This document shows positions 11,796 to 38,271 of a stretch of 64,000 nt of DNA, piece after piece; the first letter of the stretch is position 1; each line of letters opens with the position of its first letter. Under the pieces are notes generated by a model. That model searched no databases, was not told the DNA's origin, and worked only from the letters and a program-made list of their open reading frames with translations. The translations under genes and the position numbers were made by a program. Source of the stretch: Diplonema japonicum (taxonomy: Eukaryota; Protista; Euglenozoa: Diplonemea); contig OZ025719.1 in assembly GCA_964019335.1 (NCBI GenBank), positions 248,001 through 312,000 of the forward strand, given 5' to 3'.

Positions 11796-11988
11796 CCACT
11801 AAGCCCACAGGCCAAAAAACCGGGAAAAAGTCAATTTCTCAAAAAATTCAAAAAAGAAATGGCAGTATTTAAACTAGTTGATGGCAGGCGTAATGAGCTA
11901 TTTTATTAGGTAAAATTCCGCTCGTGCGCACAAATGAAGCGCCAAACTAGTTTTTATGTCATATGTATATGACATGTAGGTTTAGTGG
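11796..11988. mobile_element. Degenerate piggyBac-like MITE
   Basis: ccactaagcccaca versus the reverse complement of the right end, ccactaaacctaca (12/14 match). Subterminal near-palindrome tgtcatatgtatatgaca. Flanks ttag/tttg only loosely resemble TTAA. Confidence 0.4.
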
Positions 11989-12022
<34 letters not shown>

Positions 12023-12025
<3 letters not shown>

Positions 12026-12766
12026 GCTATTTACTGCCAAAAAGTAATGACTTTACCGTTACCTCTCGGTTCCGCATTTTACCATCTCGGGCCCTGCGGG
12101 CCCTCGACGGTAAAATGCGGAACCGAGAGGTCGGTAAAGCATTACTTGGCGGTAGGTAAGTGGTTTTATTTCACGACACTCTGAAATTACTTCACCACGA
12201 GGGGCACAACAGGGTGACAAGGGGTACAACAAGAGAGGGGTTACAAAGGTTACAATACAAGTTGTTTTTCCTCCTTTTGTTGACTAAGAGCTGCCGCTGT
12301 CGCTGGCATTGCCACTGTCACCATCTCTAATCAGGCCTTCCCATACCTGGCGCGGCCGCTGGCTCCTTTTTTTCTGCTGCTTCGGTATTTTGAAGTCTTT
12401 TGGGGTGCTTGGGTAAGCTGACTAAGTTACCCTTACCCACAGAAGAGTTACCCACAGAAACTGGGAACAAGGCCTAGCCAAAAGTGGGCAAATTGGGAGG
12501 AAAAAGTAGTCCAACTTGGAACTGAGCCGAGGCAAAAGTTGGCCAATTGAGCTGAACCTGGGGGGAAATAGCAAACTGAGAGGAAAAAGTAGCCCCACTG
12601 GGAACCGAACCGAGGCAAAAATTGGCCTACCGAGGCATATTATTTAACGGAAACCCCCAATTACTTCACGGAAAACAGGCCATTATTTCACCGTGAAGTA
12701 ATGAGATTTAGCGTGAAGTAATGGGCCCCCCAGTGCGTGAAGTAATTTCTGAAGAGTGAAATAAAA
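12023..12766. mobile_element. 744-bp non-coding hairpin-ended element, family A copy 1 (flip)
   Basis: Near-identical to 24080-24823. Terminal hairpin of ~135 nt (12027-12160) with a perfect 23-bp inner stem. The inverted repeat ttttatttcac..gaaattacttcac right after the hairpin matches the far end. gtgaagtaat motif is iterated. Inserted in poly-A. Confidence 0.9.
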
Positions 12767-13270
12767 AAAAAAACGACGAGCTTTACCACTTTTTTTTTCC
12801 TTCTTCTTTTTTTTCTTTCGTGCGTTCGCGAGGAGTCAACATCTAGCCTTGGAAAAAGCTACATTATATTTGTCTACAAAAGAATTTTCAAGCTCCGAGG
12901 GTCCCAAAAAGAATGCTCGTTGCTAGCAATAGAGGCAATAGAATCAACGGAAGAAAAAAAAAAATATTTTTGAACCCCTAACTCTGTGCTTTCCATTTTT
13001 TTTTCCACCCTCATGCACACTGAAATTTTATCGAGTTTTTTTTAGCTCTTTGTATTGTAACACTTCAAGCACTGCTAATAGTTTTCTCAGATTGAACCCG
13101 TTTCAATGGTCCCTCTCTACCTGCAATTAACAAGAACTGTCGCTTTGCGGTCTGCGAGGGGGAACGAAAAAAAAAAGAAGTGGGATTAGCGAAAATCTTT
13201 TTTTCTTTATTTTCTTTTTTTTTCCTTTTTCCCTCCACCGTTGTGGACTAAGAACAGAATAGGCCGAACC

Positions 13271-13302
<32 letters not shown>

Positions 13303-13411
13303 AGACAGGGAAAAAAGAAAGAAAAAAGCTCTCTCCTGCCTCGTATCAACTATTTGACTCCCTAGCTCCCTTTCTTTTATTTTCTTTCTCTTTTTTTTTT
13401 TTTTTTTAAGT

Positions 13412-13955
13412 GGGCCGTTGCTAACCACTTCGTTTCCTATCATGGTGGGAAAAAAAAAAAGATTATTTTATTACAAGAATGAGTCCTTGACTTGTCTTAA
13501 ACAAAAGGGGACCGTTGGCAACTTGTTTCGGGGGTTTTACTAACTTTTCTCCAGAATTTTTTCGGCACGTACAAAAACAACGGCCGGTTCCTCGATTTTC
13601 CCCCCTCCTTGGCGAGAAAAGGCAATTGTATAAAGGAGAGGGTTTTTCTGGGGAAAGAATTTTTTTTTTCCGTGATGGGGCTGCACAGTATGATGCTTCG
13701 GGGATGATTGTCTCCGGGAGGTTTTTTTTTACGCCAAATCAAGGGTGCGACAGGAGACCACTCTTCTCCTCGAGCCAAACCCCCCCCCTACCTAGCACGA
13801 CTCCAAGCAATGTTTCTCGCCCAGATGCCGTCCATCTCATCGCGACAAACAGCCACCGCAGGCACCAGACAGCAACCGCAGAACGGTGACCGATTAGTGT
13901 GCATTTCTACCTGAACAGTGAGCACTCCCATGCACACTGAAATTTTATCGAGTTT
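13412..13955. repeat. Mosaic of degenerate dispersed repeat fragments
   Basis: 13412-13443 matches 40482-40512. 13473-13590 matches 27296-27410. 13871-13929 matches 33091-33159. catgcacactgaaattttatcgagttt occurs at 125, 13012 and 13929. Confidence 0.75.
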
Positions 13956-14461
13956 TTTATTTATTTTTTTTTCCGGGTTTTTACAAACTGTATTAAGTTG
14001 TACACGAACTACGGCCGGTTCTTTCCTTCTTTTCTTCAAAATTAGTTCCCCGTTCACGATGATTCGTTAAAAGGGAACTAAATGACGGACGTGTGCGGGA
14101 AAAAAAAAAGGAAAAAAGGTGCCACAATAGGCTGTAACATCTCTCTCTCTCTCTCCCCCCCCCCCCCCCTACCCCCATCTACTGTGAATGTCTTTCTCCC
14201 TTCTCGTCATGTAATTCTTTTGAGCGAGGAAGGGATGTTTAAAAAAAAAAAAACTGAACCATCACCGCTAACCTCAACCTCTCCCTTCTAATGGGAAAGA
14301 AGTTTTGCTCATTTTATGGGGATTGCGCTTGTTAACACTTGGGAATTTCTTCTGGGTTAGGCCGGGATGACTCTCTACTAAGGGGGAAAAATGAATTGAA
14401 GACTGAACTCACCAAGTTTATTTTATTTTCTCCCTCCCTCCAATATTTAAAAAAGAAGAAG

Positions 14462-14494
<33 letters not shown>

Positions 14495-15069
14495 GCTACG
14501 TACCAACAGTCTATTTATGGCAACAAACAGTGAACAGCTGAAAGAACCTCCGCCCGCCCACTCCGCCCTTATTTCGTCAACCATGGAACCCGCAAACGAT
14601 TACGAGCGGTTCACTCGACGATAAGAACTAGCTCAAGTGCAACGAAGCGGGACGGCAACTTTGCCTTCTTGCTCATAAGTGCGTGGGCGATATCCCCCCC
14701 CCACCCTCCCCCCTTTCACTCTTTTTTTTTTTTTTGCTGGAACAAGTACTTTGAAAAGAAATTGTTGTTGCAAAAAAAGAGTCCGTTTTATCCCTGCTTT
14801 AGGTGAAAACGGACAAGACAAACAAAAAAAAACCCACCCCTCTTTTTTTTCTTTTTGCGCTACAGAATTGGAGATGAATGGAAGCTGAACATGATAAACA
14901 GGAGCCTCACTGTCCCTTGGCTCGTTGCATTTCTTCTTTATTCGTTTCTCTTCTGTACTTGTTTATTTCCCAACTAGCTCCTACGGGTAATCAAGGACAC
15001 CTCGTTTCTTTATCACCGCCTTTGTTATTTTACAAACTCCACATCAGATTCACATCCAACAACATAAAC

Positions 15070-17928
15070 ATGAAGTTCTTTGCAGTGCTTGCGCTGCTTT
15101 CGGCAGGCTCTATGGCGAATGTGACCCCTTTGCCACCAACCAGTGCCCCTTCGTCGGGTGCACCTGTTCCTACTTCTGGTCCTGCGAGCAGGATGCCAAG
15201 CCCTTCGAAAGATCCTGTGACATCAAGCCCATCCTCTGGTGCTCCCAAGCCGTCACCAACCAGTGCCCCTTCGTCTGGTGCACCCATGCCTACCTCTGGT
15301 CCCTCAAGCACAATGCCGAGCCCCTCGAATGGACCTGTGTCTGGTGCCCCCATGCGTACTTTTAGTCCTGAAAGCAGCATGCCGAGCCCCTCGAGCGTGC
15401 CTGTGTCTGGTGCCCCCATGCCCACCTCTGGTCCCTCAAGCACAATGCCGAGCCCCTCGGGCGTGCCTGTTCCTACCTCTGGTCCTGCGAGCACCATTCC
15501 GAGCCCCTCGAATGGTCCTGTTTCTGGTGCACCGATGCCTACTTCTGGTCCTGCAAGCACAATGCCGAGCCCTTCGAATGGTCCTGTGTCTGGTGCACCG
15601 ATGCCTACTTCTGGTCCTGCGAGCACCATTCCGAGCCCTTCGAATGGTCCTGTGTCTGGTGCTCCCATGCCTACATCTGGTCCCTCAAGCACTATGCCGA
15701 GCCCCTCGGGCGTGCCTGTTCCTACCTCTGGTCCTGCGAGCACCATCCCGAGCCCTTCGAATGGTCCTGTTTCTGGTGCACCGATGCCTACATCTGGCCC
15801 CGTGAGCGGCATGCCGAGCCCGAACGTGCCTGTTCCTACCTCTGGTCCTGCGAGCACCATCCCGAGCCCCTCGAACGGACCTGTGTCTGGTGCTCCCATG
15901 CCTACCTCTGGCCCCGTGAGCGGCATGCCGAGCCCGAACGTGCCTGTTCCTACTTCTGGTCCTGCGAGCACCATTCCGAGCCCTTCGAATGGTCCTGTGT
16001 CTGGTGCTCCCATGCCTACTTCTGGTCCCTCAAGCACTATGCCGAGCCCCTCGGGCGTGCCTGTTCCTACCTCTGGTCCTGCGAGCACCATCCCGAGCCC
16101 TTCGAATGGTCCTGTTTCTGGTGCACCGATGCCTACATCTGGCCCCGTGAGCGGCATGCCGAGCCCGAACGTGCCTGTTCCTACCTCTGGTCCTGCGAGC
16201 ACCATTCCGAGCCCCTCGAATGGTCCCGTGTCTGGTACACCGATGCCTACATCTGGACCCGTGAGCAGTATGCCGAGCCCGAACGTGCCTGTTCCTACCT
16301 CTGGTCCTGCGAGCACCATCCCGAGCCCCTCGAACGGACCTGTTTCTGGTGCTCCCATGCCTACCTCTGGCCCCGTGAGCGGCATGCCGAGCCCGAACGT
16401 GCCTGTTCCTACCTCTGGTCCTGCGAGCACCATCCCGAGCCCCTCGAACGGACCTGTGTCTGGTGCTCCCATGCGTACTTCTGGTCCTGCGAGCACAATG
16501 CCGAACCCGGTTCCTGTTCCTACCTCTGGTCCTGCGAGCACCATTCCGAGCCCCTCGAATGGTCCCGTGTCTGGTACACCGATGCCTACATCTGGACCCG
16601 TGAGCAGTATGCCGAGCCCGAACGTGCCTGTTCCTACCTCTGGTCCTGCGAGCACCATTCCGAGCCCCTCGAACGGACCTGTGTCTGGTGCTCCCATGCC
16701 TACCTCTGGTCCTGCGAGCACTATGCCGAACCCGGTTCCTGTTCCTACCTCTGGTCCGGCCTCTGGTGCTCCCATTCGTACCTCTGCCCCCTCGAGCAGG
16801 GTGCCGTCGCCGACGACAGCCCACAACTGCGAGTGGAGCGAGAAGACGGAGGCCCCTTGGACTGCGGCGCAGAAGAAGTACTGCTGTGAGAAGGAAGGGG
16901 TTCGTTGCCCTGAGAAGAAGTCGTCTGAAGAGGAGGCGGAACTGAAGAAGTGCTTGATGGAGCTGGAGAAGAAGGGGGAGTCATCCACAAACTGCTGCAA
17001 GGTTCATGGAGTGGGGTGCCCTTCTGAGAAGTACGTGTGCGTGGCTGGGGAGACTATGTCGAAGGCGAAGAGGGAGTGGTGCTGCAAGGAGAAGGACATC
17101 GGGTGCCGTGTGGACTGCGAGGCGGAATCGTTGTCGGAGACGGAGGACAAGGAGTTCTGCTGTCAGGAGAAGGGGACCTGGTGCGGGGTGGAGACACAGC
17201 AAGAGCAGGCGGTACCGACCGGCTCGCTCAGCTTCAGGCTGAAGATGAAGGGAGATGCGGCGAGCCTCCTTGCGAACCCGAAGCAGTTCTTGAGGAGGTT
17301 CCGTGTGTCGATGCTGGCGGCCTCACCCGCTCTTCGGAAGAAGCCCGAAGACCTCGTGGTGACGAGGATCGGGTCGCTGATGGCAGGGAACGCAGTCCCA
17401 AAGCTTGGGCGGTGGTTCGTGGACGTACCGCTGCAGTGGAACTCGGAGCCCCTGCAGGAGGGAATGTCTTTCAACGGGAGGAACGGGAAGGCTCTTGGGG
17501 CGGCGGCTGTGAGCTCTTCCTCGCAGGTGGGTGACGATGGTGTGTTCACAGAGTACTACTTCAAGAAGGGGAGCGAGGGGAAGGAGGAGGTGGAGGCAGC
17601 TGTGGCGCAAGCGTTGGAGAACAAAGGTCCTCTCGCTGACAACCAGCGTGGGTACGGGATGGTGGTGGAGCCCGTGGAGGGAGGCACTGAGGAGCTGAAG
17701 AAGGATGACGACAACGACAGTGCATGGAGCCCCCTCGCCTACGCTGCTGCGGCGGCAGGCGGTCTTCTCTGTGTCGGTGGTGTTGCGGCTCTCTCAGTCT
17801 TCCACAAGAAGAGGCAGGCGAGCAACGACGAGGCCAGCTTGACCCAACTGTGCCAGGCTATGGAAGTGGAACTGGAACAAGAGGACGCGTCAGAGTACAA
17901 GGTTGACCGTGAGCTGGGCTCAATCTAA
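15070..17928 (+). CDS. Mucin-like type I membrane protein, copy 3
   Basis: Start placed at 15070 (aacataaacATG, as in copies 1 and 2). PTSGPASTIPSPSNGPVSGAPM-type repeats, identical Cys-rich/TM region, divergent tail. Confidence 0.9.
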   Translation: MKFFAVLALLSAGSMANVTPLPPTSAPSSGAPVPTSGPASRMPSPSKDPVTSSPSSGAPKPSPTSAPSSGAPMPTSGPSSTMPSPSNGPVSGAPMRTFSPESSMPSPSSVPVSGAPMPTSGPSSTMPSPSGVPVPTSGPASTIPSPSNGPVSGAPMPTSGPASTMPSPSNGPVSGAPMPTSGPASTIPSPSNGPVSGAPMPTSGPSSTMPSPSGVPVPTSGPASTIPSPSNGPVSGAPMPTSGPVSGMPSPNVPVPTSGPASTIPSPSNGPVSGAPMPTSGPVSGMPSPNVPVPTSGPASTIPSPSNGPVSGAPMPTSGPSSTMPSPSGVPVPTSGPASTIPSPSNGPVSGAPMPTSGPVSGMPSPNVPVPTSGPASTIPSPSNGPVSGTPMPTSGPVSSMPSPNVPVPTSGPASTIPSPSNGPVSGAPMPTSGPVSGMPSPNVPVPTSGPASTIPSPSNGPVSGAPMRTSGPASTMPNPVPVPTSGPASTIPSPSNGPVSGTPMPTSGPVSSMPSPNVPVPTSGPASTIPSPSNGPVSGAPMPTSGPASTMPNPVPVPTSGPASGAPIRTSAPSSRVPSPTTAHNCEWSEKTEAPWTAAQKKYCCEKEGVRCPEKKSSEEEAELKKCLMELEKKGESSTNCCKVHGVGCPSEKYVCVAGETMSKAKREWCCKEKDIGCRVDCEAESLSETEDKEFCCQEKGTWCGVETQQEQAVPTGSLSFRLKMKGDAASLLANPKQFLRRFRVSMLAASPALRKKPEDLVVTRIGSLMAGNAVPKLGRWFVDVPLQWNSEPLQEGMSFNGRNGKALGAAAVSSSSQVGDDGVFTEYYFKKGSEGKEEVEAAVAQALENKGPLADNQRGYGMVVEPVEGGTEELKKDDDNDSAWSPLAYAAAAAGGLLCVGGVAALSVFHKKRQASNDEASLTQLCQAMEVELEQEDASEYKVDRELGSI
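15130..16770 (+). repeat. Coding tandem repeat of alternating ~66-bp and ~48-51-bp PTSGP units
   Basis: Reiterated cctacctctggtcctgcgagcaccat / ccgagcccctcgaatgg. Confidence 0.9.
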
Positions 17929-18723
17929 GATTAAAGATGCTGATGCTGAGGATGACGAGCAAGCACACACAACAAACAACAGACGATATTACTTTTTTCT
18001 TTTCCCTCGAAACCTTTTTTGTGAAAGCGCATTTGAACCTACCGCCATCCCAAGAATACATACTACAAGTATGTAATGTTGCATGAGCTGCATGGTTAGT
18101 TTCTTTATTTCCCCTGTCTCATTCCCCTTTTACTCCACACTTTTCGGGAAGTGTTCCTAAGATGGAGTGACCCATTTTTTTTTTTAATTTTTTTTTTTTT
18201 TGCATCTTTCTTTATACGAATTGAAGAGCGAACAATAAGAAAAGAAAATGTAACAAAGCCCCCCCTTTTTTTTTTGAACTCTCCATAAATAGGAGTGTCT
18301 CTTTTTTAAGATGATTCGGGAAAAGGAGAGAAAAAAAAAGAAATTGTTAGAAAGCAAGAACTGAAGAAGGAACATTAAAAAAAAAAAAACATTTTTATTT
18401 AATATTAATCTCAAAGGGAGAAAGCACAAGCCAGACCCCAAAGAACTCATACATAAATATACCTTCATAGGTAAACATCCAAGGTAAACGCAGACTTGTG
18501 AGTTTCTTTTTATTTTTTTTATTTTCTATTTTTTTTGACCTCTATTTCATTTATTCTACCTCCTTGTTTCCTACCTCTTTTCTTTTCATGAGCGAGCCCT
18601 CTTGGTTGAGGCAATGCACAATCCCCCCCCCTTTTTTTTTGCTCAGTTCATGTGTTCATTGTTTTAATTGTTTTTTTGCAATGCATACACAACACCGACA
18701 GATTGTAGGGGGAAAGAAAGACT

Positions 18724-19482
18724 ATGTTGCTCCTTAGCCTACTGGCCATATGTACGGGGTCGACCTCCCCTGACCCGTTCTCTGTGTCCGTGAGAGCTGC
18801 AGTGAAGTCTGTCTCCGTCTTGGAGTCTCCCATCCCTCCGAGCTCTTGGTCGCCTTTATCAGTTCCTGTCTCGGGTGTTCCCATGCCTACCTCTCCTGCA
18901 AGCTCAGTGCGGAGCTCTTCGAACGGGCCTGTGTCTGGGATGCCTGTGACTACTGGTCTTGGTACCTCTGGTGCTCCAGTTCTTACCTCCGCCCCCTCGA
19001 GCGGGGTGCCTTCATCAGTCCCTCCTGAGGCACCCTCATCTTCAGTTCCTGTCTCTGGGGCACCGTCATCAGCACCCGCCTCGATCCCTCCTAGCTCTTG
19101 GTCACCAGATTCCAGAGCACCCACTTCGACATCGGTCCCTCCGATCTCTGAGTCGCCCGCTTCGGGTGTCACAGGGTCGCCTGCACCGCTCACTGCAGGC
19201 CCAGGGACTGGAACGCCGAGAACGGTGTCGCCACCAGTGACCTTCGCTCCTGGGACACCTACTCCCTCCTCTCCTCTGGCAGGGCCGCAAAAGCAGAGGG
19301 GAAGCGAGTCCTCGATGGACGGCGGGAAGATTGCTGTTGTGACTGCGTCTGTGGCAGGGCTGCTCGTTGTTGGTGCAGTCGCCTTCACCGTCTACCGCAG
19401 GACACGAGCCTTGCAGTACTACGCAGCCATCAACCTGGAACCAGGGACCCCCTACGATGAGATGGAGCGGGCACTGGAGTGA
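18724..19482 (+). CDS. Short mucin-like type I membrane protein related to copies 1-3, lacking the Cys-rich domain
   Basis: 252 aa. Signal peptide MLLLSLLAICTG, shared SNGPVSGMP and TSAPSSG motifs, TM IAVVTASVAGLLVVGAVAFTVY followed by RR. Confidence 0.8.
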   Translation: MLLLSLLAICTGSTSPDPFSVSVRAAVKSVSVLESPIPPSSWSPLSVPVSGVPMPTSPASSVRSSSNGPVSGMPVTTGLGTSGAPVLTSAPSSGVPSSVPPEAPSSSVPVSGAPSSAPASIPPSSWSPDSRAPTSTSVPPISESPASGVTGSPAPLTAGPGTGTPRTVSPPVTFAPGTPTPSSPLAGPQKQRGSESSMDGGKIAVVTASVAGLLVVGAVAFTVYRRTRALQYYAAINLEPGTPYDEMERALE

Positions 19483-19823
19483 GCAGCATACCCCCTTCTC
19501 TGAGAAGGAAGAGGAAACTAAACTGTAAAATGAAAAATGTCCTGGCACGTACCCGGGTGCGCAAAAAGCTCCTTCAGAATCCCCGGGCAGATGGTCCGGC
19601 CTGACAGATTACTGGGACATTATCAGTCGCCCTTTTTCATTTTACAGTAGTTGTCCGTTAAAACCTGGGGAGGGGTAACAACAACAAAATAAGAATTGAA
19701 AAAAAAAAAAAAAAAAAGAACTCTCAGAACTCGAAGATTATTTTTAGAGAAAAAACAGCGTACAGGTAATAACCAAATAACTTTTTCCCACTCAAGTCTG
19801 TAAGCAGAATTTCCACCACTGTT

Positions 19824-20012
19824 TACGGTAACCCATAACTTTTTTTCCACTGTCCACTACGAGTCATTGTGCACTTCAAAGAAGCTATCGGCGCCGGGTG
19901 GCATCATGTTCTTTGCGGTGAAAAGGTTGGTGGTTACACTGAACAGTGAAGAAGTTCTGCGGCTCACAGGCCTCTCAACGGTGGGAAAAAAAAGTAATTT
20001 AGTTACCGTGTA
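19824..20012. mobile_element. Possible decayed TIR element (MITE)
   Basis: acggtaac..actttttttccac at the left is inverted as gtgggaaaaaaaagt..gttaccgt at the right. Imperfect match. Confidence 0.35.
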
Positions 20013-20596
20013 CGTTGTCTTTCTCTTATTTTTAAAACCTGAAAGAACTCCCTAACTTAATGTTGCTACTAAAAAAAAAAAGAAAAAAGAGAGGTTGCCA
20101 TTGTCTGGTGCATCCTCCTGCAGGACGGTCCCCCGGCTGTGCGCACGAACAACCGACTCTTTTTCTTTTTCTTTTTCATTTTTTACAATACCCCGCTCAG
20201 CAACTCCTTCGTGTTTCTTGTAAAGTGTGTCAAAAGCACTCAATGCTAAGCAATCACGTATCGAAATATACACGTTGCTAGCGGCTGTTCTCTTATGCTC
20301 TTTAAAATCACAATCCTTTCTTGGTAGGGGTTTTTTCTTTTGTTTGCCCTCTCTTTTTTAAATGTCTCTCTTTTTTTGCTCTCTTTTTAGCCTTTTTCCC
20401 CCCCTAAAAAAGCTTCCGTTTCCTAGCGGTTTCAATTTAGGGGAAAAAAAGCCCGCCCAAACGACGCCCCCCTTGATTGAGCTAATTTTATTGGCCGACC
20501 TTTCCTTTTCTTTTTAAAGCTCCTTTTTTTTCACTCTTATAACACACCCCCCGACAGGCTATTCACAGCACGCTTCTTTTATAAATTCTAAAAAAG

Positions 20597-21406
20597 ATGA
20601 AGATGGACGGTCTTGTGTTCGTGGTGACGGGAGGAGCGTCCGGTCTCGGGGAGGCGGTTGTGAGGATGGTGATTGAGAACAACGGGCGGGCTGCGATCTG
20701 GGACATGAACACGAAGAGGGGGAATGCGCTTGCGGAGGAGCTGGGGGCGACGGAGAGGATCGCGGTGTGCAAGGTGAACGTGACGAGCGAGGAGGACGTG
20801 GACAAGGCGGTGGCGGCGACGGTGGAGAAGTTCGGGCGGATCGACGTGTGCGTGAACTCCGCCGGAGTAGGAGGGGCGTGCCTCACTGTGAACAGGAAGG
20901 GAGAGGCGCACGGGGTGAAGGCCTACGAGAGAATCGTGGCGATCAACCTGATGGGGACCTTCCTGTGCGCGTCGCGTTGCGCGGCGCAGATGTCGAAGCA
21001 GGAGGTGAACGACGAGGGGGGCAGGGGCCTCATCGTCAACATCTCGTCGGTGGCGGCGATGGACGGGCAGAATGGTCAGCTCGCCTACAGCGCCTCGAAG
21101 GCGGGGGTGGTCGGGATGACCCTCCCCATGGCACGCGACCTCTCCAAGATGGGGATCCGCGTCAACACGATCTGCCCGGGGATCTTCGACACCCCGCTCG
21201 TCGGGGCGAAGAAGCCTGTCGACAACCGCGACGTCCAGAAGCTCGGCCGCGTTCAGCAGTCCCTCCTCAGCGGGCAGCTCTTCCCCAACTCCCGCTTCGG
21301 CCGCCCCTCCGAGATCGCCCAGCTCATCAAGGCCATGGCTGAGATCACCTACTTCAACGCTGAGACCGTCCGCCTCGACGCAGGTATCAGGATGCCCAAG
21401 CTTTGA
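20597..21406 (+). CDS. HSD17B10: 3-hydroxyacyl-CoA dehydrogenase type-2 (HSD17B10-like SDR)
   Basis: TGGASGLG cofactor motif, GQ.AYSASKAGVVGMTLPMARDL, PGIFDTP, and C-terminal NAETVRLDAGIRM typical of this family. Confidence 0.88.
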   Translation: MKMDGLVFVVTGGASGLGEAVVRMVIENNGRAAIWDMNTKRGNALAEELGATERIAVCKVNVTSEEDVDKAVAATVEKFGRIDVCVNSAGVGGACLTVNRKGEAHGVKAYERIVAINLMGTFLCASRCAAQMSKQEVNDEGGRGLIVNISSVAAMDGQNGQLAYSASKAGVVGMTLPMARDLSKMGIRVNTICPGIFDTPLVGAKKPVDNRDVQKLGRVQQSLLSGQLFPNSRFGRPSEIAQLIKAMAEITYFNAETVRLDAGIRMPKL

Positions 21407-21839
21407 AGTGGGTGAGATGAAAGGGGGGGGGGGGGAAGAAATATCGATTTTTTCTACATTAGTGGATCCCCCACCCCCTCCCCTACCCCTCCTCGCAATA
21501 GTAAATATACGGGAAAAAAAGAAAGAAAAAAAAGGGAACCCCACTTCCCCCTTCCCCTGGGAAAGTACAATCGGCTATTACGCACCACCAACTGCATAAT
21601 AGGCGCCAAGAAAAAAAAGAAAGAAAAAAGGAGAAGAAAATAAAAACGGTATTGGGGAGGGACATCCGCCAGCCCTCAATACTCACCCGCCCCTTTTTCC
21701 TTTCGATTTTTTTCCCCCCTCTCTTTTTTTCTTCATTTCCAACCCCCCCCCCTTTTTTTCATTTTGTCCCCCCCTATTTTCTCAACCAGTTACCGATTTC
21801 TTAAAAGGCACGAAACAAAAAACAAAAAAAAAAAGAAAC

Positions 21840-24032
21840 ATGAATGAGAATGAAATAGAGCAATGGAGACCGAAGGTTGAGGAAGCAGGGGAAAGATGCA
21901 TAGTACAACTGCCTGAAGAGGTTGTAAACAGGATCGCAGCAGGTGAAGTAGTACAACGTCCTGCGAACGCGGTGAAGGAACTGGTCGAAAACTCACTAGA
22001 CGCAGGGGCGGACCGGATAGAGGTAACCGCAACAGGAGGCGGCCTCACCGTACTAAGAATAGAAGACAACGGCCACGGCATCAGAAGAGAAGACTTCCCG
22101 CTCCTATGCGTCCGGTTCGCAACTTCAAAACTAACAAAATTCGACGATCTGCAATCAATATCCACATACGGGTTCAGAGGAGAAGCCCTGGCATCCCTAT
22201 CAATGGTATGCAGAATAGAAGTCACAACAAGACGGAAAGACACAACGGATACGTTTTCCGCAAGATTCCGCGAAGGTGTTCTGAAAGACGATTCCCGCGT
22301 GCCTGCGGGAATGAACAACCAGGGGACCATCATCAAAGCCACTGACATGTTCTACTCCATGCCTCAAAGACGATCCATGTTCTCGAAGCCGAATGAAGAA
22401 TACCGGCTTCTCGTGGATGTTCTGTCGAAATATTCCATCCAGTACCCGAGATGCTCATTCTTGTGCAGAAAGGCCATGGGCGCCGCACCTGATCTGTCGG
22501 CCATGAAATCGTCTGACCGAACCAACGCAATACGACAGATTTACGGGAAGGACCTTGCCGATGCTTTGCTGCCCATAACCGTTCGATGTGATAAGCTGCA
22601 TTTTCGAGCGGAGTTGTACGTAAGCGGGCTGTCGTACTTCACCCCGAAAACCGAGCAGATCTTCTTTATCAACGGAAGGCTCGTCAACCATGAAGGATTG
22701 TCACGCATGATAAAGACTATTTACCAACCGCTTCTCCCGAGACAGGCACATCCTTTTGTGTTCGTTGAACTGAACGTGAAGCCCGAAGATGTCGATGTCA
22801 ACGCGCACCCCACCAAGGAAAAGGTCATCTTCCTCAACGAGGATGAGATCTTATCCGTGATTCAAAACGAGGTCACACCTGTCCTTCAACGATCCCTCGA
22901 AGTGTCTGGTTCGTTGCACCTCAAACGGAAGCTTTCCGATGCAGAGGGCTCCTTTGGAGTCTCCGCTGCACTTCCAAAAAGTACTAAAACATCTGAAAGT
23001 GGTACTTCCGCACTTTCATACGCCCATGAGATGGTAAGAACCGATCATCTTTTCGAGCAAGGCGCCATGGGGAAGTTTATGAACAAAACAGCATCATCAG
23101 CGGTGACGAAGACATGGTGGAACACCGACGCCGGGAGGCTAACCGTGGTACAGAACAGATTGGACTCCATTGTACGCTCGCATGATGAGGAGCTTCGTGA
23201 AGCGTTGTCGAAGTACGTCTTCGTCGGGTGGGTCAACACCCGCCACATTCTCGTTCAGCTCGATTTGGGTCTGTACATAGTTGATAGCTGTGTGGCGTCT
23301 TGTGAGTTGTTCTACCAGTTGTGTCTTGCTTCTATAGGTGATGTGACACGTCTTCGGCTTTCGTCGCCTCTCGGCGTGCGGACTTTATTGGAGTTGAGCC
23401 CTGGTGCGAGCTCCGGTCTTGTCTCATTTGCTCTTTCGTGTTTAATGGGGAACGCCCGCCTCCTTTCGTCGTACTTTGCTATCGACATCTCGTCTGATGG
23501 GGTGCTCGAGTCGCTTCCCAACATATTAGATGGGTACACCCCCCCGTATCATAGGTTGCCTTTGTTTTTGTTGAGGTTGGCTGTTGAGGTTGATTGGGGG
23601 ACCGAGGAAGGGTGCGTGTTAGGGGTGGCGGAGGAAATCGCGAATTTTTACATGTTGGACGATGGTGCGATAGTCGAGGAGGAAACAAAGGTTGAGGCTG
23701 AGGCGGTGAAAAATGATGAACAAAAGAAAGAAGAGGAACCTGTTGTGAAAAAACCCCGGGTTACACACATTGCCGTGCCGGACTTAGACTCCGATGGCAG
23801 CAGCGATGATGAAAAGGAACATGTCCCGTTGGCCATGCGTGAGAAAAAAGAGACGATCCGCGAGACGGAGACGGAGACGAGCAAGCCAAGTGGCGACCCG
23901 TCGTGGGTGGCGCAACACGTGCTGTACCCTGCCATGAAACGTTCCCTTCTACCCCCTTCAAACTGGAAAGGCACCGTTTTCAAAAGGGTCGCCGATTTAC
24001 CTACCATGTACAAGATCTTCGAGAGGTGTTGA
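21840..24032 (+). CDS. MLH1: DNA mismatch repair protein MLH1
   Basis: VVNRIAAGEVVQRPANAVKELVENSLDAG, TYGFRGEALASLS, DVNAHPTKEKV, and the invariant C-terminal KIFERC. Confidence 0.97.
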   Translation: MNENEIEQWRPKVEEAGERCIVQLPEEVVNRIAAGEVVQRPANAVKELVENSLDAGADRIEVTATGGGLTVLRIEDNGHGIRREDFPLLCVRFATSKLTKFDDLQSISTYGFRGEALASLSMVCRIEVTTRRKDTTDTFSARFREGVLKDDSRVPAGMNNQGTIIKATDMFYSMPQRRSMFSKPNEEYRLLVDVLSKYSIQYPRCSFLCRKAMGAAPDLSAMKSSDRTNAIRQIYGKDLADALLPITVRCDKLHFRAELYVSGLSYFTPKTEQIFFINGRLVNHEGLSRMIKTIYQPLLPRQAHPFVFVELNVKPEDVDVNAHPTKEKVIFLNEDEILSVIQNEVTPVLQRSLEVSGSLHLKRKLSDAEGSFGVSAALPKSTKTSESGTSALSYAHEMVRTDHLFEQGAMGKFMNKTASSAVTKTWWNTDAGRLTVVQNRLDSIVRSHDEELREALSKYVFVGWVNTRHILVQLDLGLYIVDSCVASCELFYQLCLASIGDVTRLRLSSPLGVRTLLELSPGASSGLVSFALSCLMGNARLLSSYFAIDISSDGVLESLPNILDGYTPPYHRLPLFLLRLAVEVDWGTEEGCVLGVAEEIANFYMLDDGAIVEEETKVEAEAVKNDEQKKEEEPVVKKPRVTHIAVPDLDSDGSSDDEKEHVPLAMREKKETIRETETETSKPSGDPSWVAQHVLYPAMKRSLLPPSNWKGTVFKRVADLPTMYKIFERC

Positions 24033-24079
24033 TTTTTAGATTTTTTTTTCTCCCCCTCCGTTGCGCACAAACAAAGTTT

Positions 24080-24823
24080 ATAGCTATTTACTGCCAACAA
24101 GTAATGACTTTACCGTTACCTCGAGGTTCCGCATTTTACCGTCGAGGGCCCGCAGGGCCCGAGATGGTAAAATGCGGAACCGAGAGGTCGGTAAAGCATT
24201 ACTTGGCGGTAGGTAAGTGGTTTTATTTCACGACACTCTGAAATTACTTCACCACGAGGGGCACAACAGGGTGACAAGGGGTACAACAAGAGAGGGGTTA
24301 CAAAGGTTACAATACAAGTTGTTTTTCCTCCTTTTGTTGACTAAGAGCTGCCGCTGTCGCTGGCATTGCCACTGTCACCATCTCTAATCAGGCCTTCCCA
24401 TACCTGGCGCGGCCGCTGGCTCCTTTTTTTCTGCTGCTTCGGTATTTTGAAGTCTTTTGGGGTGCTTGGGTAAGCTGACTAAGTTACCCTTACCCACAGA
24501 AGAGTTACCCACAGAAACTGGGAACAAGGCCTAGCCAAAAGTGGGCAAATTGGGAGGAAAAAGTAGTCCAACTTGGAACTGAGCCGAGGCAAAAGTTGGC
24601 CAATTGAGCTGAACCTGGGGGGAAATAGCAAACTGAGAGGAAAAAGTAGCCCCACTGGGAACCGAACCGAGGCAAAAATTGGCCTACCGAGGCATATTAT
24701 TTAACGGAAACCCCCAATTACTTCACGGAAAACAGGCCATTATTTCACCGTGAAGTAATGAGATTTAGCGTGAAGTAATGGGCCCCCCAGTGCGTGAAGT
24801 AATTTCTGAAGAGTGAAATAAAA
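24080..24823. mobile_element. 744-bp non-coding hairpin-ended element, family A copy 2 (flop)
   Basis: Colinear with 12023-12766 at offset 12057. Visible differences are 1 SNP, a TC/GA dinucleotide in the stem, and the inverted 25-nt tip (24141-24165). Confidence 0.9.
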
Positions 24824-34879: not shown

Positions 34880-37800
34880 ATGGGAATCTGCAACGCAAAG
34901 CTAGATGATCCTCCAAACAAGAAGGATCACCGGAAGCCAGGAAACCCCCACACACGTCACCACCCTAAAGCGTACGAGCAGCAACAATTCAAGAAGACAA
35001 AGGAGTCGCCCCCTCGGCCTCGAGGATTTGCTGTGGGCGACAAAATAGAAGCATGGTGGGAAGGAAGCTGGCACCCCGCCTCAGTACGAACAGTGCGAGG
35101 CGATGGGGGCTTCGATATTAACTGGGAGGACGGTACCATGTCCTATGGTGTGTCTCCTGAATTTCTTCGGGCACCGAATGTAAGGGTAGATGATAACCCG
35201 GTAGGCCCCCTTGTCGGAAATGAACTGATAACTGGCGACCTCAAAGCCGACCAAGTCGGCCACACCCTCTTCCGATCTCTAGACGGGAGGGAAGGCCATC
35301 TCATCCCGTTTGATCATGTTCGCTTCAAGCTCCGTGATCCTTCTCTTGTGGTGTATTTCGGGTGGCCGCCCTCACGCGGATCTGAGCTATCCGACCTCCT
35401 CACGAAGACAGACCCTAACGCCAAAGGCGTCTCACAGGAACAATGCCAGCACTACGCACGCGTGAAGTGGCTGTACGTCCTCATCGACAACGACAAGAAC
35501 GACAAGATATCATCGTGGGAGCTGGAGACCGCCTTGATACATAATGTATGGAAAGCTTTTATTATCAAAAAAAAAAAAAAAGGCAAATGTCCGGACTGAG
35601 CTGGGTATCTCCGCCGATCTTGCAGCGCCCCTCTTCCGTCAGATGGACACCGACGGGTCCGGGTGGATATCGTACGTGGAGTTCTACAGGTACTACACCA
35701 CGAACCCGTTAGGGAAGTATAACAAACAAGATGTATGAGAAGGAGAAAAAAAAAAAATAATAATAATAATAATAATTTTTTTTTTTTCAAGAAGAAAAAA
35801 CAGGACCAGCACTATGTGAGGAAAATTTTCAACAAGCTGGAGGGGAACCACAAGGGGGGCATCACGAAGTCGCAGCTGCGGAAGGTTCTGAATGAGGACA
35901 AGTCGCTGCAGCTCCGCCTCGGTTGGCCGGCACGTCAAGCCGAGAACCTCTTCGACTTCCTCGACCAAGACCGCTCGGGGACAGTATCTATGGACGAGTT
36001 GAAACAGTTCATGAGGGTACAGCTTCTGTTCAACAAGATCGACATTAACAAGAGCGGGTACATCGATCAGCACGAATTCGGTGAAGCCTTAGGCGATCCG
36101 GAACTGTCGTCGGAGCTCGGGGTACCCCAACGCAGCGCGCAAAAAGTTTTCAACGCAATCGACTACGACCACTCCGCAAGTATCACCTTCGCAGAGTTCT
36201 TCAGATATTTCGCAAGCAAGCTCCGGGCAGTCACCGGAAAAACCAAGAAAAACAACAACCACAACAACAACAACAACATGAAGCTTGAAGGCAGCGCGAA
36301 GTACGACCTTGTGAAGAAAATCGGCGAGGGAACCTTCGGTCTAGTGTACCTCATCCGCCGAAAAACAGACGGCCTCGACTTGATCATGAAAAAACCAAAG
36401 GTGGTTCAGGGTCTGTCCATGGACGATGTAAAGCAAGAAGCCAGCATGCTGTCACGTTTGAAACACCCTCACATCGTAAGGTTCATCGAATCATATTGGG
36501 AAGCAGGGGCATTGATCATCATTACGGAGTTCGCAGCAGGAGGCGACATCCGTTCGAAGATTGGAACGAGAGGATGCGGGCAGGAAAAAACCATGCTCTG
36601 GTTCTCACAGTCGTGCGAGGCCGTGAAATATCTGCACGACAGGTTCATCTTACACCGTGATTTAAAGCCCGACAACATTTTCCTAACACAAGGCGGTGCG
36701 GTTAAAATAGGCGATCTTGGTTTAGCAACACAAATGCGGTCTCGGCGTGATAAGGCACGCACTCAGTGCGGGACTGAGATCTACATGGCGCCTGAGCTGA
36801 TGAGGGGTCTTCCATATGATGAAAAAAATGACATTTGGGCGTTAGGATGCATTCTTTACGAGATGGCTGTGGGGAGGTTCGCCTTTGATAACGTTGCCAT
36901 GATCGTGGAGGGGGACTGTCCTCGGGACACGCCTGCTTACTGCCGTACCTTGGTCGACTGGATGCTGGAGGCACAGCCCCGTGACAGGCCCTCTATCGAT
37001 GAGCTCCTTGAGGAGTTGCAACATGAAATCGACCCCTCAGGCATGGCTTCCTATATGTCAGATAGAAATCTGCGAAGGGACCGCCCAGGTGCACCTGTTA
37101 TCAGTCCTAATGATGCTTACGGTTACAGTATGTTTGAGGGGGAAAGGGGGGGAAAAAAATGACTATTTACTAAATAAAAATCAGATTACCTGATTTTTAC
37201 GAGGGATTTTTTTTTTTTTTTTCACGAGTAGTTGAATTTCACGCGAGCGAAGCGAGTGAAATTCAAAAAAAAACGAGTGAAAAAAAAAAATTCCGAGTAA
37301 AAATCTGGCTGATTTTTATTTAGTATGATATTTTACTTAATTTTTGTAAAGTTAAATGAGGAAATTTCGGACACTGTGAACCCTTTATGTTCACTTCTGC
37401 GAAATGTTCACACTGATGTCAAAAGTAAGCCTGATTGCCTGAGAAGACGATGTCAAATTGACAGAATTCTGTAGGTTTTGTGTAATTTGTGTCGGCACTT
37501 GATCATCGCTCTTCAGAAACTGCTGGTTTTGCGCGGGGGCTTGATCAGGTCTGACTTCCAGGTTCCTTCATCAACAAGGTATTGTGCAAAAGAACGCCTG
37601 TATGCATGGCCAGTGTAATATTCGGCATTTGCCAGCCTCAGGTGTGATGCTTGGTGACCCGGAAACGTGGTAAAGTGTGTTTATGCCTCTTTTGCCTCGG
37701 ATGCTTGACTGTTTTTTGCCTCAGATACCTGACTCTGGTTTGGGTTGGTTGGATTTCGTCTCATATTTTGAGAGGCGATTAATGTATGTGTCGAGCGACG

Positions 37801-38271
37801 TTTGTAGAAGCGCAACATGCCATAGCCCAGTGGTAGCCCAGTGGTTATGTCGTCGCACTCGTCTCCTGGAGACGCCAGATCAAATTCTGGACCCCGAACT
37901 TTTTTCGATAAAATCGGGGTCAAAAAAACGGTCCCTCGGGGATTGAACCCTCGACCCCTGAAACCCTGGCCGAGGGTCCTGACCTCTGACCTACGGCGGT
38001 GTTAGCTGCCACCAGATGCAAAAAATGAAGACGAATACCGAAAAAGCCCGAAAATTGCTCAGAGTAAAAATCAGATTTTACTTTACATTTACAGCACTTT
38101 TTTAAGCCAAATTCGGCCTATTACTTTACCTTTATTCTTCACTTTACATTTACTCGTGAACGGTAAAGTGATTTCTGATTTTTATGGCTCTTTATAAATT
38201 TCCTCATGTAACTTTACAGAATTAAGTAATAAAAAAAAAAAAAAAAAAAAAAATGTACAGATGGATATTGA
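34880..38271 (+). CDS. Acylated Tudor/Agenet-like + multi-EF-hand + NEK-family Ser/Thr kinase; introns 35546-35582, 35733-35803, 37128-38260
   Basis: MGICNAK N-terminus, FAVGDKIEAWWEGSWHPA, EF loops (DNDKNDKISSWE, DTDGSGWISYVE, DQDRSGTVSMDE, DINKSGYIDQHE, DYDHSASITFAE), and kinase motifs GEGTFG, HRDLKPDNIFL, KIGDLGLA, YMAPE, DIWALGCILYEM. The last intron gives ...AYGYNGY*. Confidence 0.88.
37819..37905 (+). ncRNA. Degenerate tRNA-like Pol III unit inside element B
   Basis: Duplicated A-box tagcccagtgg, degenerate B-box gatcaaattc, T-run terminator. Not a canonical cloverleaf. Confidence 0.4.
37922..38000 (-). ncRNA. tRNA-like Pol III unit inside element B
   Basis: On the minus strand: A-box taggtcagagg, B-box ggttcaatcc in a short stem-loop, then T7. 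The acceptor stem is not intact. Confidence 0.55.

Follow-up and report, generated by a model that had tools for sequence, protein, structure and literature searches.

Inverted hairpin tips in a young 744-bp repeat of Diplonema japonicum as probable products of sporadic template switching

How does one copy of a repeat come to carry the tip of its terminal hairpin in reverse? The question is raised by a 64,000-nucleotide stretch of DNA (the window), part of contig C72 of the 62.5-Mb Diplonema japonicum assembly, in which two copies of a 744-bp element differ in the orientation of the hairpin tip, here termed flip and flop. A preliminary description of the window had tied the two isomers to mobilization of the element, by hairpin nicking and hairpin-transfer replication. 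We conclude instead that the repeat probably belongs, as a young non-autonomous family, to a group of small DNA transposons whose autonomous members have a tyrosine recombinase (YR) as their only enzyme, and that the tip inversion is probably a sporadic template-switch error rather than part of the transposition mechanism. Copy 1 (L001) corresponds to C72:260023–260766, and the relevant features of the two copies are as follows.

12023–12766, + strand: copy 1 (L001), a 744-bp non-autonomous element with the flip tip; the 8-bp palindrome ATAGCTAT stands at its start and GTGAAATAAAA at its end.
12032–12154, + strand: terminal hairpin in copy 1; the arms span about 55 nt, the folding energy predicted for single-stranded DNA is −55 kcal/mol, and the 5′ arm has A and TT bulges.
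12066–12067, + strand: outer mismatch dinucleotide of copy 1, GA converted to TC with loss of the tandem G.A/A.G mismatch.
12068–12083, + strand: left half of the inner perfect 16-bp stem of copy 1, pairing with 12109–12124.
12084–12108, + strand: inverted 25-nt tip of copy 1, a 3-nt loop between two GGGCCC arms; the loop is TGC here and GCA in flop copies.
12109–12124, + strand: right half of the inner perfect 16-bp stem of copy 1, which holds the right switch point of this copy.
12164–12196, + strand: internal inverted repeat of copy 1, complementary to the right end of the element, which gives an asymmetric inverted-repeat layout.
12692–12746, + strand: three direct subterminal repeats of CGTGAAGTAAT in copy 1, candidate protein-binding iterons.
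12737–12766, + strand: right terminal inverted repeat of copy 1, with GTGAAATAAAA at its end.
24080–24823, + strand: copy 2, with the flop tip, the majority state in the family; its body is the same as that of copy 1.
24141–24165, + strand: flop tip of copy 2, with CGAG/CGAG tandem G.A mismatches at the inner and outer site on this strand.

The two copies have the same length and orientation, and no difference was found between them over the 607 bp that run from the internal repeat to the end of the element (the body). The tip at 12084–12108 is the exact reverse complement of that at 24141–24165, and the A and TT bulges of copy 1 keep their orientation, as the preliminary description had stated. 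It had overlooked that the 5′ arm of the hairpin differs at two more places: copy 1 alone has A at 12041, where all others have C, and positions 12066–12067 read TC in copy 1 and GA in copy 2. The second of these bears directly on the extent of the exchange. Because the TC of copy 1 fully complements the unchanged right arm, the left exchange point must lie outside the inner 16-bp stem, whereas the right exchange point lies inside it. The earlier proposal that the exchange took place within the inner stem therefore holds on the right side only.

Were the two isomers generated in each round of replication, they might be expected to occur about equally throughout the genome; a ratio of about 1:1 had been named in the preliminary description as support for a mechanistic link. 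The inner 57 nt of a flip copy are the reverse complement of those of a flop copy, so the asymmetric right arm was added to the tip in the search pattern in order to orient each match, and up to three mismatches were allowed genome-wide. The flop pattern gave 87 matches, one of which was the reverse strand of a flip copy (L002), leaving 86 flop copies. The flip pattern gave three matches: L001, L002 (C9:624603) and L031 (C67:415193). A shorter pattern for the flip-type right tip arm recovered four extra copies, the left halves of which matched neither the full flip nor either of two hybrid tip states; in one of these copies (C103:51624) the left arm is grossly deleted.

The three flips arose independently, each as a singleton. 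They differ from one another by 5–14 body substitutions and are dispersed in the body tree. L001 shares its entire body with flop L003 (0/607 differences), the body of L002 is nearest to that of flop L011 (3 differences over the 607 bp), and that of L031 is nearest to flops L021 and L052 (12 differences). The preliminary description had itself named an isomer unique to a single copy as an outcome that would speak against its reading, and each flip is indeed confined to one copy; the absence of other genomic copies, which it had also named, is contradicted by the approximately 90 that we detected.

The hairpins of the three flips also differ from one another. That of L031 shows a symmetric inversion with both outer sites unchanged. 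In L001 the left outer GA has become TC, the TT bulge is kept and the right arm is unchanged, while in L002 the TT bulge has been lost and the right outer site flipped. The pairs of exchange points thus differ among all three, and the bulges are never inverted. In each copy the replaced stretch is the reverse complement of the opposing stretch in the same palindrome, and each fits the exchange of one continuous stretch, bounded in the left and the right arm by points that do not mirror each other, for the opposing reverse complement.

Tip inversion is accompanied in the family by related rearrangements of the same hairpin. In L004 both left-arm GA dinucleotides have become TC with the loop orientation kept, the right outer site has turned complementary in five 744-bp copies, and the tip carries deletions in three. 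A similar range of states was found in a sister family, recognized by the tip of L040, a longer element described below. This tip gave 171 oriented matches, the first 100 of which were typed, from the pattern matches, as left dinucleotide/loop/right dinucleotide.

GA/GCA/GA: about 70 of 100 copies, the majority state.
GA/TGC/TC: 14 of 100, loop inverted and right arm turned into a perfect complement.
GA/GCA/TC: 9 of 100, arm converted with the loop as it was.
TC/TGC/TC: 1 of 100, full flip.
TC/GCA/GA: 1 of 100, left arm converted.
TC/TGC/GA: 1 of 100, loop inverted and left arm converted.

Imperfect arms have become perfect complements at the left outer site of L001, in L004, in the five copies altered at the right outer site and in the GA/GCA/TC and GA/TGC/TC classes of the sister family. 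The exchange in the sister family falls inside the 6-bp GGGCCC stem, a microhomology that is too short to serve as a recombinase core site or to support homologous recombination.

Template switching within imperfect inverted repeats is known to homogenize the arms and to invert spacers (PMC8604942, PMC8794818, PMC7202029), and the combination of tip inversion with arm homogenization seen here matches this documented outcome. A polymerase copying the quasi-palindrome would jump to the opposite arm as template and return at another point, whereupon the stretch between the switch points would become its own reverse complement and the tip would be inverted. Where the switch points are not mirror images, one arm would become the perfect complement of the other. 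The likeness to quasi-palindrome template-switch mutations extends to several particulars: the inverted stretch is an exact reverse complement, imperfect arms are perfected, events recur independently, switch points vary and microhomology is enough. The present events differ in two respects: they affect the functional end of a mobile element, and they seemingly cluster at copying rather than with age. Chloroplast DNA offers an analogue of the tip inversion in its minute inversions of hairpin loops. If this reading is right, the hairpin rearrangements of these families provide a clean natural catalogue of template-switch products.

What kind of element, then, carries this hairpin? A DNA search of the genome yielded at least 40 full-length copies of 96–100% identity among 628 candidates. 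Mean divergence from the family consensus is 0.9%, and private (singleton) substitutions average 1.7 per 607-bp body, from which we infer that the family is young. Two pairs of copies with identical bodies (L001/L003 and L006/L007) each lie on one contig in the same orientation, 7–12 kb apart; since their flanks are unrelated, these are separate local insertions rather than segmental duplications. The earlier view of a recently active, non-autonomous element is supported by these figures. L006 and L007, at C41:394456 and 387234, combine identical bodies with differing flanks in a way that suggests local reinsertion, and a second same-orientation pair, about 4 kb apart, is found at C87:86391 and 90131.

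The 744-bp element contains no open reading frame (ORF) of 60 or more amino acids, no tRNA and no Rfam match above threshold; the sub-threshold Rfam matches were to microRNA-precursor models, which fit any long hairpin. An intact 5′ end of the ATAGCTAT type is present in all 66 copies examined, and the base preceding TAGCT is A in 61 of them. The GTGAAAT end is likewise present in all 66 and is followed by at least four A residues in 65, the A-run after the GTGAAATAAAA end varying in length (0 to more than 26 nt). The two flanks are alike rich in A, their runs reaching 24–30 nt or more, and no consistent target-site duplication (TSD) was found in the flanks of the same 66 copies. The absence of an ORF and of a clear TSD, and the A/T-rich targets, had been correctly noted from the two window copies. 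Rearrangements aside, point substitutions are not raised in the hairpin (0.49% compared with 0.90% in the rest of the element).

The relatives of the element were more informative than the element itself. A profile search of the genome with PF00589 gave 32 matches, and one of these lies in a 1.69-kb element (L040, 1054–2740) that has a homologous start, a hairpin with a CTCGAG/CGAGAG outer mismatch, the TTTTATTTCAC internal repeat and the GTGAAATAAAA end followed by poly(A). Parts of its ends align with the 744-bp element at 78–90% identity. Its sole ORF, on the opposite strand, encodes 426 amino acids with a match to PF00589 (E = 2.4e-9) and the YR motifs GLRGEE, HSMRR and GYI. Only four homologues of this protein, all unnamed, were detected among 5.8 billion proteins; it is weakly Xer-like, with a marginal XerC-like match in a PDB sequence search (E = 0.11). 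YR elements of 1.4 kb with the same ends, bounded by TTTATTTCAC and AAATAGYTAT, were found at L034–L037. Common to the group are a ATAGCTAT-type start, a hairpin of approximately 110–150 nt, an internal repeat complementary to the far end, and the GTGAAATAAAA end in an A-tract. The CGAG/CGAG tandem G.A motif recurs on one strand, antisense to the recombinase gene, in families that are otherwise unrelated in sequence.

Because its ends and hairpin are homologous to those of YR-only elements, we regard the 744-bp repeat as a non-autonomous Crypton-like DNA transposon, and not as a Helitron or a short interspersed element (SINE); the copies without an ORF retain both ends, as non-autonomous members would. 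On this homology, mobilization by a YR supplied in trans by a related family is likely. Of the two enzymes suggested in the preliminary description, the YR is thus the one retained, the same-end elements encoding PF00589 only; the HUH endonuclease is considered below. The recombinase would join the two ends of the element and then recombine the junction with A-tracts. In the predicted fold of the joined ends the hairpin grows to arms of about 115 nt (−80 kcal/mol as DNA), with the end junction adjoining a poorly paired stretch. As in Cryptons, the autonomous members are YR-only, with Arg, His-x-x-Arg and Tyr motifs, and show no reverse transcriptase, long terminal repeats or clear TSD. They differ from Cryptons in being much smaller (1.4–1.7 kb for autonomous and 0.74 kb for non-autonomous elements) and in having a long terminal hairpin, an asymmetric inverted repeat and A/T-tract targets.

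The autonomous elements show tip variants of their own. The tip of L040 (C7:841084–844569) is shortened at 1113–1130 to a single GGGCCC without a loop, with the mismatch polarity reversed, and the same short tip occurs in the exact opposite polarity at C28:371613–371647. Three autonomous-like copies, at C36:2197, C60:186510 and C69:152652, have the long tip in the majority polarity.

With the class of the element in view, the other explanations for the two tip orientations can be weighed. In hairpin transfer of the parvovirus or poxvirus type, an HUH nuclease would nick the hairpin, which would be unfolded and copied in each round to give flip and flop. In parvoviruses such as adeno-associated virus (AAV) the two isomers occur in about equimolar amounts, inversion takes in the whole terminal palindrome and proceeds from a fixed nick site, and the HUH Rep is required. 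The present element shares with them an asymmetric terminal-hairpin tip that occurs in both orientations, and its minus-strand layout, in which the 5′ end is complementary just upstream of the 3′ hairpin, with T-rich targets and no TSD, resembles that of non-autonomous Helitron2/Helentron elements. Against this, flop and flip stand at 86:3, the flips are singletons in which only an inner stretch with variable borders is exchanged and the bulges are never inverted, and the same-end relatives encode a YR only, in 1.4–1.7 kb; the 1.69-kb relative has no room for a Rep. No match to PF14214 was found in the genome, a weak negative because the controls were silent too. We therefore consider hairpin transfer highly improbable; hairpin-transfer replication of a cellular transposon is unsupported here, and the link between flip/flop and hairpin nicking can be dropped. 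Helitron2/Helentron itself, which on the strength of the minus-strand layout had initially been our favourite at slightly better than even, was rejected because elements with homologous ends proved to encode only a YR and PF14214 gave no match; no Rep or helicase was detected, and the hairpin is far longer than in those elements. Equally improbable is a SINE-like retroposon with a poly(A) tail and no link to a recombinase. The variable A-run after the GTGAAATAAAA end would suit it, but A is just as abundant in the left flank, TSDs are absent, 5′ ends are intact in 66/66 copies, no tRNA or other RNA polymerase III-type head was found, identical copies are paired a few kilobases apart, and the related elements that share these ends and A-tract flanks code for a YR but not for a reverse transcriptase.

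Reversible inversion of the tip, driven by a YR or by homologous recombination in the manner of the Flp or Hin switch, would draw on YR genes that are present in the genome and on arms that are inverted repeats, and tip orientation varies in the sister family too. The exchange points are not fixed, however; stems of 16 bp, or even 6 bp, do not have the length that a YR core site or homologous recombination would need, and often only one arm has been converted, a non-reciprocal outcome that a reciprocal crossover does not give. We judge such a switch improbable, and we think it equally doubtful that the flips are artefacts of assembly or polishing in which reads were misaligned in reverse within the palindrome. 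In favour of an artefact, every flip is confined to one locus, misorientation is conceivable where the inner 57 nt are the reverse complement of the alternative state, and the short-read contigs across the repeat bridge no stretch from flank to tip. Yet neither L001 nor L002 is just the hairpin in reverse complement: the bulges are in place, and L001 has the extra change at 12041. The same variant states also recur in many sister-family copies (14 and 9 of 100), which is not expected from random polishing errors.

If the errors are template switches, did they occur as the element was copied, or did they build up slowly in the inserted copies during chromosomal replication, unlinked to transposition? 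Quasi-palindromes are known replication hot spots (PMC7202029), and no intermediate of transposition has been observed, both of which favour slow build-up. The private substitutions of the rearranged copies point the other way. The three flip copies have 0, 0 and 1 in their bodies, compared with the mean of 1.7; under a model in which rearrangements accumulate in proportion to age this has a probability of P = 0.016, and larger sets of rearranged copies gave P = 0.006–0.06. An age-independent model fits the data (P = 0.10–0.30). Similarly, copy 1 has three changes in the 5′ arm and tip of its hairpin (element positions 19–86) and none in its 607-bp body. That the rearranged copies are not older than average weakly suggests that the errors occur when the element is copied. 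We therefore lean slightly towards a template switch at or near the copying event, as against later chromosomal replication or repair, and weakly favour errors made, for example, during synthesis across the folded hairpin in transposition or associated repair. Slow post-insertion build-up, with the same errors unlinked to transposition, is the less probable course, though a possibility to be taken seriously.

A more specific proposal, which we consider rather unlikely, is that tip inversions, arm perfection and tip deletions are all scars of a hairpin copied as a folded single strand in transposition. The scars would then be left by second-strand synthesis on an attC-like folded intermediate, or by its replicative resolution. 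Integron attC sites and the attP(+) site of CTX phage are folded single-stranded substrates of YRs. The hairpin described here shares with these sites its length and imperfect pairing, the extrahelical bases and the strand-specific mismatches, a likeness of structure only, and in the predicted joined-end fold a poorly paired central stretch borders on the putative crossover point, as in attC and attP(+). The host here is a eukaryote, unlike those of the integron and Xer sites, and the resemblance to these folded sites is structural, known from predicted folds. Were the proposal true, these would be the first YR transposons of eukaryotes for which movement by way of a folded single strand is demonstrated, and their rearranged tips would serve as a natural reporter of that passage.

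Several observations weigh against our preferred reading, in which sporadic template switches altered the hairpin of a YR-mobilized element, or against the timing given to them. The timing test uses small numbers and a rough model, and it could be weakened by the four extra copies that carry a flip-type right arm and are possibly older. Clean flips make up approximately 3% of the copies, and with those four right-arm copies any flip-like arm is present in at most about 8%. The public runs, available as short-read contigs, confirmed the flip at none of the loci; contigs from four runs of three studies break at the repeat borders, and none bridges unique flank and tip (14 runs contained about a quarter or more of the sampled words, and 20 at least some). 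L004 retains the G between its two converted dinucleotides, so that a single continuous switch is insufficient; its pattern would need two events or mismatch repair of the folded strand. The inverted-loop class is common in the sister family (14/100), to which it may have come by descent or through many separate origins. Finally, no hairpin of the 744-bp family, out of approximately 90, is found within 3 kb of the 32 PF00589 matches, and the mobilizing enzyme is accordingly deduced from the related families.

Longer copies with the same ends and an ORF, to which the preliminary description had looked for the enzyme, were found in the related families (L040 and L034–L037) and not in the 744-bp family itself. 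Three candidates from the latter were rejected. L045 (C9:498097–501097; 240–488 and beyond) is a 744-bp copy split at about position 249 by an OTU-domain retroelement, with a long ORF and an OTU-like GDCFFEAV motif, and owes its length to this insertion. L058 and L061 are insertion or tandem variants. In L058 (C107:227366–230366) a solo ATAGCTATTTA motif stands at about 215–240, 20 nt upstream of the element start, perhaps left behind when an element inserted or was excised there earlier. The right flanks of L027 and L030 both adjoin the same unrelated repeat, which starts TTCACTATGATAGG, at slightly different offsets; these two copies may have inserted into the A-tract preceding another mobile element. 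Among the YR-bearing loci, L036 (C12:467859–471341) is a cluster of three elements.

L036, 274–1015: a 744-bp copy.
L036, about 1016–1241, opposite strand: a truncated relative with a degenerate hairpin.
L036, about 1319–2393: a 1.07-kb YR element, the recombinase frame of which is broken by a single in-frame TAG at 1711.

The window itself holds an element of a second family, which has the same layout and is unrelated in sequence; no tRNA was found in it.

37163–38231, + strand: second-family element, with a left hairpin at 37168–37325 that carries CGAG/CGAG, an internal repeat at 37313–37367 complementary to the right end at 38196–38250, and then poly(A).

The hairpin-ended YR group is not mentioned in the diplonemid genome paper (PMC10161547) or in the Crypton literature searched, and these very small transposons of diplonemids are apparently undescribed. 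Just upstream of copy 1, the short segment 11864–11945 stands out in all four runs by its very high summed contig depth, and many contigs end at 11888 and 11934. An expressed small RNA or a further abundant short repeat is the probable explanation.

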